Shown one piece after another: positions 285 to 8,199 of a stretch of DNA of 8,199 nt (position 1 is its first letter; each line of letters starts with the position of its first letter). The position numbers were made by a program, and so were the translations under genes. This stretch comes from Amoeboaphelidium protococcarum X5. Lineage: Eukaryota; Fungi; Aphelidiomycota. The notes below the pieces were generated by a model. That model worked only from the letters and a program-made list of their open reading frames with translations, did not search any database and was not told the origin of the DNA. Where the stretch lies: the NCBI GenBank assembly GCA_023515725.1, contig JALDTO010000189.1, forward strand, positions 1 to 8,199, in the 5' to 3' direction.

Positions 285-1598
285 ATGGTTATCGCTAATC
301 ATTTATTATTGGTAGCTTTTACAGCTATTACTGCTGGTGCCAGTTTAATTTAGCATCCACTTATGTAAAGCGATCATGTACAGCCGCTTAAAGTGTATCG
401 TTGTCCATTAAGTGATGAGAAGGCTGCGCAGGCACTGAAGGCTTGGGTGGAGGATCAACAAGCCATCAACCTGCTGGATCACTCGGCAGTTGATATATGG
501 TCTAATGAGCAATATCAAGTAGGTAGGGATTTGGATTTTGCCACATCTGCAGAAGGTGAAATTTAGCCGCCTTCTGGATGTCGATTGCTTCTAAACTCTG
601 CAGAATTGTCTGATCTGATATCAATGGAAAAGCTGGCTTTTCGAGAGATGTTCGCTCCTGATGATGCTGATTGGTTCAAGAATTATCACTCTTTCGATGA
701 TATGACTGCTTCCATAAAGTCTTGGATTAGCGGATGTCCTTCAGCTTCAATGTCCTCTATTGGATAGTCCCATGAAAACCGTGATATAAATGTGGTTCGT
801 TTTAGTAGCGAGACTGGTTCCGCAGCGAAAAATGTGATCTGGATATCTGGCGGTATACATGCCAGAGAATTTATAAGCTCTCATGTGGCCTCTTTCATCA
901 TTAGAAGCATTGCTGATATGTACAACTCTGGTGATGAGCTAGTGACCGAATTTTTGCAGCATTATGAATTCGCCATTGCATTCCACATCAATCCGGATGG
1001 GTATGAATTTGCTCGTACTCAGCGCCGAATGTGGAGAAAGAATCGTCGCGCCAACCGTGACAGATCGTTTGGAGTTGATCTCAATCGTAATTTTGATGTG
1101 TTTTGGGGTAATGGTGGCTCATCTAGATCTCCATGGTCTGATACGTATATGGGTCCATCTGCTGCATCTGAGCCGGAGGTGGCTGCGATTTAAAACTTTT
1201 TGACTGGTCTGATTCAGGAGGGAAGAAATGTTACCGTGGGTGTAGATTTGCATTCTTATGGACAGTTGATTATGCGTCCATATGGATACACTATGGATGA
1301 TCACCCTGATGAAAAGTACAACAAATAGTTGGGAGATAGTATCAGAGATGCTATTGCTTCACATTAGGACGGTTCCAGGTACAAGTCTTAGAAATCCGCT
1401 GGACTCTACCCTGTTACCGGTGGCTTTGATGACTACATGACGGAGAAGATCGGTGCCATTGGTTTCACGTGGGAGTTGCGTGATACTGGGCGTTATGGTT
1501 TCATTCTACCCGCCAAGTATATCGAGCCAACTTGTGAAGAAGTGTGGCTGGGTGTGAAGGCGATGATGAGATTCCTGCTTGACAATCCCAAGAATTGA
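285..1598 (+). CDS. Secreted zinc metallocarboxypeptidase, M14A (carboxypeptidase A/B) family, pre-pro-enzyme, 437 aa with TAR=Gln
   Basis: One continuous frame from ATG 285 to TGA 1596-1598 if 8 in-frame TAA/TAG are read as Gln; it joins supplied ORFs 585-767 and 792-1193. Hydrophobic signal-like N-terminus (MVIANHLLLVAFTAITAGAS), then a ~100 aa pro-region. M14A motifs: WFKNYHSFDD, GGIHARE (Zn ligands H69/E72), NPDGY, MWRKNR, GVDLNRNF, GPSAASEPE, DLHSYGQ (H196), LYPVTGG, FTWELRDTGRYGFILP (catalytic E270). Confidence 0.95.
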
Positions 1599-1784
1599 AT
1601 TGCTGCTTTTTGCTAGTAGTTCTGATGAATGAATTTATGACGACTTTGATAAAAATCTTTTTGTTGACTCGATAGTTTAATTATTTCCTGCATATCGAAG
1701 GTCGTTGCTGTTTGAAAACTACGATTTAGACCAGTTAGAGACATGTGTTTATAGCACTGAATTTCCTCTTCAATCCACGCTTTG

Positions 1785-1814
1785 TCTCCTCTTTCTTTTT
1801 CCCTTCCTCTTTTT
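1785..1814 (+). promoter_or_regulatory. 30-nt pure pyrimidine (CT-rich) tract upstream of the phosphatase gene, possible core-promoter element
   Basis: TCTCCTCTTTCTTTTTCCCTTCCTCTTTTT ends 57 nt before ATG 1872. The tract is seen directly. Its function is inferred from the CT-rich tracts common in fungal promoters. Confidence 0.35.
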
Positions 1815-1871
1815 AAACGTTAGAAAACTGTTAATTAAAAACTAATCAAATATTGAAGTATAGGACTAATA

Positions 1872-2828
1872 ATGAATGTCGATCTACTTTTAGACAATCT
1901 CAAGAACAAGTAAAAGTTGCCCACTGAGAATATGGTGCGCAAGATTTGTGAGCGGATGAAGGAGATCTTGATAGATGAGCCGAATGTGATGCATATAAGT
2001 ACCCCAGTATCAGTAGTTGGAGATGTACATGGATAGTTTCATGATGTTCTGGAGATATTTAGGATAGGCGGAGAGTGTCCGGATACTAATTATTTGTTTC
2101 TTGGAGATTACGTGGACAGAGGGTATTATAGCGTGGAGACAATGCTGCTCCTGTGTCTTCTAAAGATCAAGTATCCGCAGCGGATTAATCTACTTCGGGG
2201 AAATCATGAGTCCAGAGCTGTGACTTAAGTTTATGGATTCTATCTGGAGTGTCAGCGAAAGTATGGATCATCCAATGTATGGAACTACTTCACTGATATG
2301 TTTGACTATCTCACACTCTCAGTCATGATTGACAACTCTATATTCTGTCTGCATGGTGGCTTGTCGCCTTGTATTCATTCAATAGATTAGATCAGAGTAC
2401 TGGATAGATTTAAAGAGATTCCTCATGAAGGAGCTATAGCTGATATAATGTGGTCGGATCCTGAGAATGATAAAGATGATTTCTAAATGAGTCCGCGAGG
2501 TGCTGGCTACACGTTTGGCGCAGAGGTGGTGAAGCATTTTAGTTATGTCAACGATGTGTCTCACATACTGCGGGCGCATTAACTTTGCATGGAAGGCTAT
2601 CAGGTGCTCTTCGAGAATCGACTCTCCACAGTATGGTCTGCCCCAAACTATTGCTATCGCTGCGGAAATGATGCCAGTATACTGGAGATATGGGGAGTGG
2701 ATCCGCAGCAGAGGCGATTCAACGTATTCTCAGCTGCCCCGGAAAATGAACGAGACACTGCCGCTGGTAATGCAACTGCAGATGGATAAGTTGGGCGGCG
2801 ACAGGCGGAAAATTAGTACTTTCTCTGA
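1872..2828 (+). CDS. PPG1: Ser/Thr protein phosphatase catalytic subunit, PP2A-like PPP family, PPG1 subtype, 318 aa with TAR=Gln
   Basis: ATG 1872 to TGA 2826-2828 with 8 in-frame TAR. PPP motifs: GDVHG[TAG=Q][37 protein letters not shown][TAA=Q][13 protein letters not shown]-terminus is ...AEN[TAG=Q]YFL-stop, the methylatable YFL tail of PP2A/PP4/PP6/Ppg1. Segments [48 protein letters not shown] match my recollection of fungal Ppg1 better than PP2Ac, PP4 or PP6; the subtype is less certain than the family. Confidence 0.93.
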
Positions 2829-2927
2829 CACTTTGTATATACTGTAGAATGATTAAATAGTCTTGTTTATTGATCTTTGAAGTTTCCCGATGAGGTAAAA
2901 ATTTACTACATTTCTATTGCGGATTCT

Positions 2928-4589
2928 TCAAATGTCTAAATTGCATTCAAGTAGCAACTCGTCCAGCAGTAGCATGTGCCGTTAATCTCCAATCTGACTT
3001 TCAAAAAATGGATCTTGGTCATCATCTTCCACAGTCACCTTTCGATCATAATTATTCTGGCTGAGTTTATCAAGCAAGCTGTCATGAGATGTAAAGTAGA
3101 ATCGCAGATCATCGATGAATGGAACAGAGTCAGTCTCTTGTCGCGCTTTGATAGAGCTAGCACTCTGTATAATCAAAGTCTTCAATTCATTACGCTCATA
3201 TCCGTCCTTTAGAATCTAATCAAAATGCTTGGCAATATATTGAATGCATTTCTGTTCGACACGATCAAGATTAAGTTGTAAGGAGACTTTAATAATCTCC
3301 CAAATGGACACATCCATCACACTTAGAGTTGTGTTTTAATCAGCACTAAAATCTGACGGTTTAATGACATTACTCAGAGCCACGCATAGAGACAGTGCAG
3401 CCAGCGAACGCAAGCCATCCATCAGAAAAAAGTCTGCAACTATCAATATTTTGAATGCAGTCGACACTCTATCCACCTTAATTTTTAAACGGCCACAATA
3501 AATAAACTCCAAAACACTCATAACGGTAGACTCATCAATATATCCAGCTGGTTCATTCAGTTTAATACTTTGACATGCGGAGTCTCCAACACCATAATCC
3601 AGAAGATCATTGAAAAAGTCGGACCCCATCATCAATATAGCTTTGTGTGCTGGTATTCGCAACTAACCGATATTAAGTATGATATCAGCATGAAACCGGT
3701 GCATAAGATCTTGATCAGGCAAATTTTATAACGCTTAATCACTCGCAATTGGAATAATGTAATTTCGCTGTATATCATCCTACACCTGCTGGCTATAATC
3801 GGAAATTTTCACCAACTACTTTCTGTTCTAACTTTTGCCGATATCAAGCAATTATTTCTCGAGCGCTGTCAACTTCCAGGCTTTAATGACGATTTCTAAG
3901 CACTCCAATTCAAACCGATCAAGTTTGGATACCGTAATTGTACCAGTGTAAAGCCAGAATAATACAGATTACACAACTAGCGGTAGAGCTGAAGGGTGGG
4001 AGATTGTTATAGAAGATCGATCTTTAAATCGGCCGTTAAGAATATCATTAAAGTAACAACTTCTCCAACGCAGAATGCATTTATGAACTTTATACTCGCT
4101 CTAAACACTTCCACCAGCACCCTTAACCACAAAAGTCAAGTCAGTAAGCTTCTAATCAAAAAATAATCGAGACATTACGGAGACAAACTGATTCGAGTTT
4201 TCAAATGACTTGGAAAAGTTATAATCACGCAACAAGTTCCGAATCTTGTTATTCAATGCTCCGTAATACAATCTCTCAGCATCGAAACTATTGGGCTCAA
4301 TCTTGACAGCGCCACTATCTAGAAAGTAATGTACAATCTAGAGGTGTCCACAGAGTACCGCGTAATATAGAGGCGACGCAGAGAACATATCCTTGTCATT
4401 GATGGGTGCATTCTCCATTTCTACCAAGTACTTTACTCTATCAATGTCATTCATCTTAACTGCCAAGATGAGCTCTTATGAAAGTTGACTATTTCTCCCA
4501 CTAAATTGCGTCTCACTCTACGTGAAGTTATGAGCGATACTATCGACATCAGTTGAAGCGTTCTAGTCATTAGAGTATGGTAAAGACAT
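2928..4589 (-). CDS. ABTB1: Ankyrin repeat and double BTB/POZ domain protein (ABTB1/BPOZ, fission yeast Btb3-like), putative Cullin-3 adaptor, 553 aa with TAR=Gln
   Basis: Single minus-strand frame from ATG (cat 4587-4589; upstream in-frame TGA at 4629-4631) to TGA (tca 2928-2930); it joins supplied ORFs 3336-3662 and 2982-3185. Ankyrin region: ELILAVKMNDIDRVKYLVE...SPLYYAVLCGHLQIVHYFLDSGA...FDAERLYYGALNNKIRNLLRDY. BTB1: TDLTFVV...YKVHKCILRWRSCYF...WLYTG. BTB2: ADIILNI...IPAHKAILMMGSDFF...VLEFIYCG. ABTB1-type C-terminal motif: SASSIKARQETDSVPFIDDLRFY. Confidence 0.92.
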
Positions 4590-5207
4590 GATAGCTGTAC
4601 TGTTTTAATGAAAATGAAATTTCGGGTTTCAAGATCAGCAGATTGTCGTCTGTACGGTAGTAGAAACAAGAAATCGCCAAAAGAGTTTCAATAAATCGTC
4701 AAATGATCGTCAGGCTACGTCCATCTACTGCAAATCCAAGAATATCTCTATTCTGTACTAGACAACAGAGAATAAATAGCGACCAATTCTTCCAGGAGTG
4801 CGAATGGTTCTCCTTTTCCATTTGCGAATCGTAACCACTGTCTGACTATATATGAGACACACTGATAAAATGATCTCCATTCAGATATAGTCTTCAGTAA
4901 CTATTCATCTGATTTCTATAGTTTTTCACAACCACTACTGCGAGCCACATGCTTTTCTCTCCTCGATAATCGATAAGTTTTCCATTCTGGGAATGAGATG
5001 ATCTGCAGAATGATGAACAGAATGACACATGATCGTGACTAGCATTGTTGAAGTGACTCATAATGATTGTATCAATTTACACTTATGACTTCTCACATTG
5101 CCTCTATCATCATCGTCTTTGTTCAGTACATCAAAGCTTCACCTTTAGTTTTATTATTATCATAAGTACTCAAAGTACACACAGTGATTAACAGTTAAAA
5201 ACTTGAT

Positions 5208-6299
5208 ATGAAGTTGATTCGTTTGACACAACGCAACTTGAGCTACTTGCGCATCTCCACCTCGACTGCGCGCTATGCTTCTGCCGCTGCTCCTAATCCA
5301 AAGCCTTCTGCATCCAATTAGTCTAGTGATAAGGGCCACCTGTCTGAGACTTCAAAGAAGGATCCTAACTCTGCCTACTATTAGGAAGAAGCTGAAACGT
5401 ACTCTGAACAATAGCATAATGTTGATAGTCCACTTAAGCATAAGACTATGAAGATTGGTTGCGATGGTGAACACTAGGCACAGACCGAATAGGGCGCCTT
5501 AGGTGAAGATAGTAGCGAGAATATAATGAAGAATACCAGTCGCGTTGATGGCTATGGCCCGCTGAATACAGGCCAGGATGATGCTGGTGATTCTGCACAG
5601 TAATAAGGCAGAGTTCACGTATCTGGCGTGAAGAGCGATGGAGATTTCCAGTCAGTAGGAGACCAAGAAGCGATGGGAGAAAGATTAGGAGGTACTATGA
5701 GTAATTCAGATACCAACTAAGATGAGTCAATGACTGGCCGCTTGAAGAGTCTCGGCATGAAGATCATTGATGGGCTGAATCCGCAGAAACATCGCGCCTC
5801 TGATGATGGAAGCCACACGTACCAGGAGGGATTGAAAGAACGTGCTGAGAATGCTGGATAGTAGTTGAAGCACACCGCTTAGCAAGGAAAAGGCTACTAT
5901 GAAGATTTTAAAGATACTGCAAAAGATTATGGTGATGAGGCGATGGACCGCTCCCAGGATATGGTAGATTAAGCCAAGCACAAGGCATCGCGCGTTGCTG
6001 ATCAGGCCAAGAGAGGAGCCGCCAATGTTACGTAGAAAGTCTCGCACGCTATGGATGATACTGACATGAAGCACAGTGCTCACCAGGAGAAGGAGAATCT
6101 GATGGGCAAGATTCATCACTCTGAGTAAAAGGTCAAGGAAATGGCTCATGAGGCAAAGGAAGCTATGACGGGAAAAGTGAAGAACGTTGCTGAGCATATT
6201 AAGAAAGACGCTGCGGATGCTCATGAGAGAATGTTCGATGACAAGTAAGAGTACAAGCGTGCCTAGCATATTGGACTTAAACATAAGCACAAAGATTGA
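5208..6299 (+). CDS. Hydrophilic LEA-like (group 3 / LEA_4-type 11-mer repeat) protein with predicted mitochondrial presequence, 363 aa with TAR=Gln
   Basis: ATG 5208 to TGA 6297-6299, open only under TAR=Gln and missing from the supplied ORF track. N-terminus MKLIRLTQRNLSYLRISTSTARY/AS is Arg/Ser/Thr-rich with no acidic residue in the first 40 aa. The body is rich in D/E/K/A/G/Q/H/S with no Trp. The C-terminal half shows 11-residue periodicity: YYEDFKDTAKD YGDEAMDRSQD MVDQAKHKASR VADQAKRGAAN VTQKVSHAMDD. Coding status is well supported; the family call is moderate. Confidence 0.75.
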
Positions 6300-6428
6300 T
6301 ATGCTAATGTTTATGTGGTGTAAGACGCGTATAAATAAAGAATTATCTGATATTCAGTGTTAAGTTTCGTTTTTCTACTGCCTTTTTTAGGTTTAAGCTT
6401 TAACGTCAAGAAAGAGAATTTATTAAAG

Positions 6429-7175
6429 ATGGTGCAAGATACAGAGTGGGATGACATTTTGCGTGAAAAGGGCATAATTGGTCCAAAATAGGATGCCGAT
6501 GAGAAGTAGGCACCGTATATAAGGTCCTCCTAGTAGAGAACGGGCTACGTTGGCGGACATGGTAGCCGTGATGACACGGATGCATCTCGCCATGAAGATT
6601 AATCAGATTCAGAATTGGACAGTCTACTTTCTAATGACGATGATGATGGGGAAGATGAATTCATGGCCAAGTACCGGTAGTAGAGACTGATGGAGATGTA
6701 ATAGGAATAGTATGGACGGTAGTAGAGGAGCGCTCAAGGATCATCTACGCGACAAGATTTAAGTGAAATCACTCGCCAAGACTTTGTATAAATGGTGACT
6801 CGAGCACCCAAAGACCAGCTTGTTATTGTATGTCTTTATAAAACTGGTCTTCCCTAGAGCGATTTGATGGTGAGAATATTACAATAATTGGCTGATGGTG
6901 AGCGTGGCGATGGTGTTAATATGGCGTTCTATAATATTAAACACGATGATTGCATCCCAAATTACCCAGATCGTAATGTACCTACTCTATTCTTTTATTT
7001 GAATGGAGATCTTCTGGTTCAGAAGGTTAATCACCAGATACCTGGCCTGTCAATACCATCTGGTCGTGCTAGTTAACCTCAACTAGATGATGATCAATTT
7101 GAAATGCTTTGTTAAACCATAGACTGTCTATTCTCCCAATGGTGTAGTCAATACAAATCTCTCCTGAAGAAGTGA
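6429..7175 (+). CDS. PLP2: Phosducin-like protein 2 (PhLP2 / Plp2 / PDCL3-type CCT co-chaperone), 248 aa with TAR=Gln
   Basis: ATG 6429 to TGA 7173-7175 with 17 in-frame TAR. N-terminal signature DTEWDDILREKGIIGPK, acidic linker then EDEFMAKYRQQRLMEM, thioredoxin-like domain EITRQDFVQMVTRA...VIVCLYK...CIPNYPDRNVPTLFFYLNG. Confidence 0.9.
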
Positions 7176-7247
7176 ACATTTTATTGTTATTACTGTCAAT
7201 AAAAATAATATCTGTTCATAGAAATAATAATAATTTTTACATTCCAG

Positions 7248-8199
7248 TCATACAGTGGAAGTGTTGTCGTATTCAATAGTGGGTATAATGGCATTCATAA
7301 ACTTGAGAAATACCACCATGTACTGATCAACGCGGATTTCATTACCACTCGACTGGAACATGTCCATCAACTTCTTCATAACGGCAGCATGTTTGCAAGG
7401 ATGTACACACACCATATGGATCATGGACAAGTGTGGGAACTCTTCCACGGTCACAGTCTTGTTCGCATGATCTTGTGAAATGTCTTGAAAGATATCTTTA
7501 GGCTTCAGTGGCTTCCCTTAAAAGTATCCTTGTAACCAGAGTCTAGGCGTCTGGTAATACTTGTCATACGTGATGTAAAGATCATACTTGCGCGCCATAT
7601 AATTACTGCTTGTATTGCTGACAGCACTGTTCAAGCGACTTAACTGATTTGCACTCTTCATAGAAGATGTATCTTATTGCAGCATCTAAGACGGAGGAGG
7701 AGGTAGATTCTTCATATTATCTGAGACCGCTGCAGCAGGATCTTCTTCAATCATCAACTCTTCAATATCCGGAATATCTTCATCATCATCGTCATGTTAA
7801 TCCTGATTCTATTCGCTCTTACCACTAATAGGATCATCATTATTCACATTAGAACTTTCATCACCTGCTGATCGCTACTACAAAGCAGTGGATTTATCAT
7901 CTTGGCCTTAAACTTTATTCTACAAATTACCACTACCGCCATCAGCAGCAGCGACAGTCTCATCATCAATATCTACAATTTCAGGTTCATCATCATCCTA
8001 CATCTCCAACACATATCCAACCCAATCATCCTCAACCGAACTACCATCATTGTCTCCATCGTGTCGCGATTACCAAGTCACCTCTCTGACAACTTGGTCA
8101 TTGAATATATCAGCGACTCGCCGTGTGCACTACACTCCTTTAGCACATAAATACTACTTGATACCTCTAGAATTCAAATAATCCTTCCGCTTAGTATCT
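7248..8199 (-). CDS. ATG3: Autophagy E2-like conjugating enzyme Atg3, 5'-partial (N-terminus lies beyond the window end)
   Basis: Open minus-strand frame from the window edge to TGA (tca 7248-7250) with TAR=Gln. Motifs: KRKDYL...K[TAG=Q]YLCAKGVQCTRR, long acidic flexible region, [52 protein letters not shown], catalytic HPC (7395-7403), FLKF (7299-7310), [10 protein letters not shown]. Confidence 0.95.

Follow-up and report, generated by a model that had tools for sequence, protein, structure and literature searches.

The contig JALDTO010000189.1 (GCA_023515725.1), nuclear DNA of the aphelid Amoeboaphelidium protococcarum X5, a parasite of algae, raises the question of how TAA and TAG are read in its genes. 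Under the standard code, no frame spans any entire gene of this sequence, whose full 8,199 bases are the window analyzed here (contig C189 of an assembly of 346 contigs, 23.65 Mb and 40% GC). When TAA and TAG (together TAR) are read as sense, the window is tiled by six intron-less genes. We regard it as almost certain that the nuclear code is translation table 6, with UAA and UAG (UAR) as ordinary Gln codons and UGA as terminator, operating through dedicated tRNAs, an altered release factor eRF1 and drift between CAA or CAG (CAR) and TAR. The recoding is real, and it was already published for A. protococcarum in 2013.

Stop codons within the genes

The six genes, with protein lengths according to table 6, are:

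285-1598, plus strand: M14 zinc carboxypeptidase, 437 amino acids, signal-peptide-like N-terminus; 2 TAA and 6 TAG; TGA end
1872-2828, plus strand: PPG1-type PPP Ser/Thr phosphatase catalytic subunit, 318 amino acids; 5 TAA and 3 TAG; YFL-TGA end
2928-4589, minus strand: protein with ankyrin repeats and two BTB domains, 553 amino acids, Ank and BTB Pfam matches in separate pieces; 7 TAA and 10 TAG; TGA end
5208-6299, plus strand: hydrophilic LEA-like protein, 363 amino acids, open frame under table 6; 6 TAA and 10 TAG; TGA end
6429-7175, plus strand: phosducin-like protein (PhLP2/PDCL3 type), 248 amino acids; 6 TAA and 11 TAG; TGA end
7248-8198, minus strand: Atg3, 5' end lost at the contig edge; 5 TAA and 8 TAG; TGA end

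As the original prediction had it, all six frames carry in-frame TAR (79 codons), none has an internal TGA and 6/6 end at TGA; CAA and CAG are also used. Among their 2,235 sense codons we counted 31 TAA, 48 TAG, 31 CAA and 37 CAG. Considering position-specific base content, the counts of TAA and TAG are close to those expected (31 against 39 and 48 against 48, respectively), while TGA is absent where 16 were expected (P ~1e-7). The off-frames of the same genes contain 75 and 155 TGA. This test is partly circular, since the frames were bounded by TGA. A non-circular test was provided by 126 Pfam-defined kinase domains from across the genome, which contain 377 TAG, 219 TAA and no TGA, with TAA or TAG in frame in 122 of them. 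The presence of TAR within genes is therefore a genome-wide pattern. Results from outside the window come from about 290 kb of loci and from these kinase domains. The annotated genes of the other strain likewise contain TARs.

Amino acid at TAA and TAG

Proteins were searched as separate stop-free pieces, and the alignments with homologues carried X at each TAR. The columns of the PPP phosphatase were scored in 102 full-length PPG1-type homologues. The codons in question are:

2034-2036, plus strand: TAG at the Gln of GDxHGQ (PPP), Q in 101/102 homologues and in 131/133 of another homologue set
2226-2228, plus strand: TAA at the Gln of T-Q-VYGFY (PPP), Q in 90/102 and in 131/140 of another homologue set
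2388-2390, plus strand: TAG at the Gln of D-Q-I (PPP), Q in 99/102
2580-2582, plus strand: TAA at the Gln of RAH-Q-L (PPP), Q in 102/102
8154-8156, minus strand: TAG (CTA on the plus strand) at K-Q-(F/Y)L of Atg3, K-TAG-Y-L here and K-Q-F-L in human Atg3

All five codons had been quoted in the original prediction and were verified at these positions. The four in PPP do fall on conserved Gln, as claimed (Q in 88-100% of the homologues), and the remaining four TARs of this gene sit in variable columns. The Atg3 codon also agrees with Gln, by a match with the human sequence made by eye, its position not coming from a computed alignment.

Genes outside the window point in the same direction. An ADP/ATP carrier has a TAG opposite Gln in 114/114 homologues. 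Compared exon by exon, this gene corresponds exactly to GenBank KAI3634525.1 (MIR68_007436), which has Q at the TAG, and its stop-free piece is 99% identical to MP228_008392 of A. protococcarum, with identities of up to 87% in other organisms. In eRF1, TAG occurs at Q44 (Gln in 20/25) and at Q80 (47/61). At the catalytic GGQ, where 58/63 have the Gln, one copy of the gene has TAG and the other CAG.

Codon exchange between duplicate copies

The A. protococcarum genome was described as having 24.7 Mb, 40.5% GC and a genome-wide duplication (PMC10608142). In our data it is also duplicated, with paired copies 82-92% identical, and the second copy of the window is found on contig C98 at 89% identity. 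Most TARs are common to both copies. From 28 gene pairs (9,539 codon pairs) we obtained codon swap rates that depend on no external reference. CAR and TAR exchange at a rate of 0.116, compared with 0.101 for the synonymous Leu codons CTR and TTR. Non-synonymous first-position C-T controls range from 0.011 to 0.017, about one tenth of the CAR-TAR rate, and swaps of TAR with Glu, Lys, Tyr or Trp codons from 0.006 to 0.010. TAA and TAG also replace each other at 0.116, a synonymous level, so they share one meaning. In the second copy of the ankyrin-BTB gene, indels preserve the reading frame.

Gene ends

The genes with C-termini examined (PPP, Atg3, eRF1, Dom34 and the carrier) all terminate at TGA. 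According to the original prediction, four genes of the window stop where their families do; the claim holds for the three that our data cover. The C-terminal YFL of PPP matches 60/102 homologues, Atg3 terminates directly past its EYDxT motif, and the M14 domain finishes 15 residues ahead of the TGA. TARs occur as late as 3-13 codons ahead of the TGA in three genes (PPP, eRF1 and the LEA-like one). The stretch between the last TAR and the TGA was compared in 18/18 fully aligned duplicate pairs (565 codons), with 16, 10 and 64 differences at the first, second and third codon positions. This third-position bias indicates that these codons are coding and not untranslated region (UTR). In the other strain, 14/14 annotated genes have a TGA end, in an annotation that presupposes table 6. 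A search for tRNA-Sec gave no match at E 0.001 among the scored candidates, which does not by itself prove its absence.

tRNA genes for UAA and UAG

The tRNAs with UUA and CUA anticodons that had been predicted are present, in two copies each. A generic tRNA pattern search with CTA or TTA anticodon gave four matches, all coinciding with matches to the RF00005 covariance model (48.6-52.1 bits, above the cut-off). Together with tRNA-Gln(CTG) they are:

C158:362,956-363,027: tRNA with CTA anticodon, pattern and RF00005 match
C200:31,431-31,502: tRNA with CTA anticodon, pattern and RF00005 match
C158:383,536-383,608: tRNA with TTA anticodon, pattern and RF00005 match
C200:16,432-16,504: tRNA with TTA anticodon, pattern and RF00005 match
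C200:30,752-30,795 and C158:369,043-369,086: tRNA-Gln(CTG), between the CTA and TTA genes on both contigs

The tRNA-Gln(CTG) was missed by the first pattern owing to its D-loop and found with a looser one. The TTA, CTG and CTA genes keep identical order and orientation on the duplicate contigs C200 (16,432-31,502) and C158 (362,956-383,608). The CTA and TTA genes lie 0.6-15 kb from tRNA-Gln(CTG), the CTG-CTA spacing being about 640 bp on C200 and about 6 kb on C158. Considering the body from D-loop to T-loop, the closest among the tRNAs seen is Gln(CTG), with a score of 27.5 against at most 21.5 for the others. The sequences suggest that the CUA and UUA tRNAs probably arose by local duplication of tRNA-Gln(CUG) followed by anticodon change, and we infer that they would be charged with Gln.

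BLAST with tRNA-Gln(TTG) recovered only its own two copies; the CUA and UUA tRNAs were missed since they are too diverged, and the pattern search was needed. The CUG, CUA and UUA tRNAs have G28:C42 and not the pyrimidine-28:purine-42 pair of the readthrough rule, which is found in Gln(UUG) only. The unpaired 27:43 position (4-bp anticodon stem) of both new tRNAs was dropped as a special feature, as Lys and Arg tRNAs of this genome also show it. ARAGORN also called a "tRNA-Stop" on locus L046, its intron being 1,071 nt long, which we dismissed as an artefact of the low threshold. Apart from these, the region C346:4,445-7,646 (locus L008) has 26% GC and densely packed Trp, Gln, Asn and Tyr tRNAs, and is probably the mitochondrial genome.

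Release factor eRF1

Two eRF1 copies were found, one residue apart, with the motifs AAVNIKS and YQCDNRF. Compared with the human protein, they show T58A, S60V, R68K, L124M, L126Q and K130R, and retain GTS, E55, NIKS, S70, Y125, C127 and F131. Four of these substitutions are absent from the homologous fragments compared (T58A in 0/45, S60V in 0/46, R68K in 0/53 and L126Q in 0/111). L69Q and F56Q were discarded as code-related changes, being present in homologues (11/53 and 5/44, respectively). In Oxytricha and Stylonychia, eRF1 has AAQNIKS (PMC4695839), and the Stylonychia set T122Q/S123F/L124M/L126F turns human eRF1 UGA-only (PMC3384315). Since UGA-only ciliates alter the same motifs, the A. 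protococcarum eRF1 is likely restricted to UGA. The motifs named in the original prediction are altered, and the predicted specificity of eRF1 for UGA is suggested by the ciliate analogy.

Proposed mechanism and alternative explanations

Homologue columns, swaps between duplicate copies and kinase domains concur in the table-6 code that had been predicted. We suggest that dedicated CUA and UUA tRNAs, whose genes are observed and whose probable source is tRNA-Gln(CUG), would decode UAG and UAA as Gln. By analogy with ciliates, eRF1 may have lost efficient recognition of UAR via T58A, S60V, R68K, L124M and L126Q. With UAR freed, CAR and TAR drift into one another as synonyms, a step that is directly observed here, and about half of the Gln codons are consequently TAR.

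Some observations weigh against this scheme. The backward control of the tRNA pattern search gave 2 chance matches, so that the four true ones rest on their coincidence with RF00005, and the acceptor stems and discriminator bases, relevant for Gln charging, are outside the compared stretch of the tRNAs. Moreover, eRF1 keeps the core residues GTS, E55, NIKS and YxCxxxF, and the eRF1 of Tetrahymena recognizes all three stops in vivo (PMC4695839). Both facts would fit a dual meaning, in which TAR is Gln inside genes and yet terminates some of them, with a partly omnipotent eRF1 outcompeted by the tRNAs. No examined gene terminates at TAR, in a sample of about 290 kb. Against a dual meaning stand the C-termini, all at TGA, the coding-type conservation that reaches the TGA past the last TAR in 18/18 duplicate pairs, the TARs located a few codons ahead of the TGA, and the 14/14 TGA ends of the other strain, with the reservation already made about its annotation. 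We consider a dual meaning improbable; outside this sample, TAR might still occasionally end a gene.

The remaining alternatives seem much less probable. Editing of the mRNA could preserve the standard code by converting TAR to CAR (U-to-C) or to UGG (adenosine-to-inosine, A-to-I), and A-to-I editing of TAG is known in some filamentous fungi. However, TAR aligns with Gln and not with Trp, and in the LEA-like gene 13 TARs are covered by an 860-nt contig from an RNA run. The whole run shows 10 T>C changes (one of them non-TAR) and 10 A>G, fewer than editing at every TAR would require, in a weak test since the run is an environmental metatranscriptome that may hold DNA. With cognate CUA and UUA tRNA genes and an altered eRF1, editing is also unnecessary, and we regard it as very unlikely. 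The same applies to TAR encoding another amino acid (Glu, Tyr, Leu or Lys), or to TAA differing from TAG. Other protists do have codes of this kind (PMC5304391), but here both TAG (101/102 and 99/102) and TAA (102/102 and 90/102) fall on Gln columns, replace each other at the synonymous rate and exchange with CAR far above any other codon. Regarding pseudogenes or assembly errors, nothing besides the stops themselves speaks for them. The kinase domains (122/126) and the essential eRF1 and Dom34 genes carry TARs and no TGA, most TARs occur in both duplicate copies and TARs are present in a second strain, and contigs of the source-sample run match the window with 0 differences in several pieces. 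This explanation is already refuted by the genome-wide pattern, and we give it practically no weight.

Comparison with known codes

The use of UAR as Gln in A. protococcarum was reported by Karpov et al. 2013, as cited in PMC5304391, PMC6299283 and PMC11687900, and X5 is the strain of the 2013 study (PMC3975115). KAI363xxxx accessions belong to X5 and KAI365xxxx to FD95 (PMC10057920). The record thus concerns the same species and code and, by accession range, the same strain, and the GenBank proteins already have Q at TAG. The code would have been new only in a lineage with no such record, which is not the case here. In the literature searched, which left Karpov 2013 and Mikhailov 2022 (Curr Biol) outside, we found no discussion of A. 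protococcarum eRF1 or of suppressor-type tRNAs. The linked CUG/CUA/UUA tRNA trio and the T58A/S60V/R68K/L124M/L126Q eRF1, partly convergent with that of hypotrichs, may be undescribed machinery, which we propose only tentatively.

Ciliates with table 6 (Tetrahymena, Paramecium, Oxytricha and Stylonychia) have the same UAR=Gln and UGA stop, and Tetrahymena likewise has additional Gln tRNAs, whose anticodons are UUA and CUA (PMC4695839). T58A is shared with Oxytricha and Stylonychia, and L124M with the Stylonychia UGA-only set (PMC3384315). Unlike in the ciliates, the A. protococcarum eRF1 has AAVNIKS, YQCDNRF and L126Q (L126F in the Stylonychia set), with T122 and S123 kept. In A. protococcarum TAG is no rarer than TAA, in contrast to the preference for TAA in most of these ciliates (bioRxiv 2023.06.19.543857). 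The origin is also independent, in a lineage related to fungi. The same codon meanings are found in the unrelated Hexamita, Streblomastix and ulvophyte green algae (PMC11687900, PMC4695839). In contrast, Paraphelidium tribonemae, of the same phylum, uses the standard code, with transcripts without in-frame stops (PMC6299283), which places the origin of the change inside the aphelids. The reassigned codons of Condylostoma and Blastocrithidia double as gene ends, unlike those of the A. protococcarum genes examined here. We know of no other nuclear reassignment of a stop codon to sense in the animal-fungal lineage.

Annotation of this genome must use table 6. With its tRNAs and eRF1, A. protococcarum offers a case in which to ask whether capture of UAR by Gln alters the same residues of the release factor each time.

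Genes of the window and additional observations

A family was assigned to 5/6 genes of the window from the stop-free pieces. The M14 peptidase matches Pfam Peptidase_M14 in two separate pieces, at 768-1190 over profile positions 24-165 (E 7.7e-46) and at 1392-1595 over positions 234-285 of 286 (E 4.3e-12). PPP was recognized by Metallophos Pfam pieces, and fungal PPG1-like proteins reach 64% identity with it. The ankyrin-BTB protein is ABTB1-like, as suggested by its domain order. The phosducin-like gene was identified by the piece 6888-7073, similar to phosducin-like protein 3 (E 7e-8), and Atg3 by PF03987 in two pieces, the C-terminal one aligning with the plant and human proteins as far as EYDYT. 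Window positions 8124-8199 are identical to C13:157,639-157,714 (minus strand), and the missing 5' end of Atg3 therefore probably runs on into that contig. For the LEA-like protein, a Pfam search gave no significant family match. Its gene is overlapped by a contig from the RNA run and (5270-6187) is the best-covered stretch in the freshwater metatranscriptome, a contig depth that cannot rank expression.

Rfam gave no match within the window. A 344-nt contig of an RNA run lies at 4627-4977, in the interval from which the ankyrin-BTB and LEA-like genes diverge. This region has a minus-strand TGA-free frame without ATG (5071-4688), and the second copy is strongly divergent at 4736-4934. The contig could be a small spliced gene, UTR or library DNA.

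The window is also present in a second strain that carries this species name. In addition, 5-46% of its words recur in metagenomes from biofilm, freshwater and sediment and in runs labelled with other organisms, suggesting that related strains occur in nature and in algal samples. Two other loci (L041:5295-6242 and L013:1865-2530) encode secreted-looking proteins with Lys/Asp/Tyr-rich repeats and hardly any Gln codons, whether CAR or TAR. On the minus strand of L048, a 122-codon frame (6544-6909) presumably resembles the Crinkler-type N-terminal domain.

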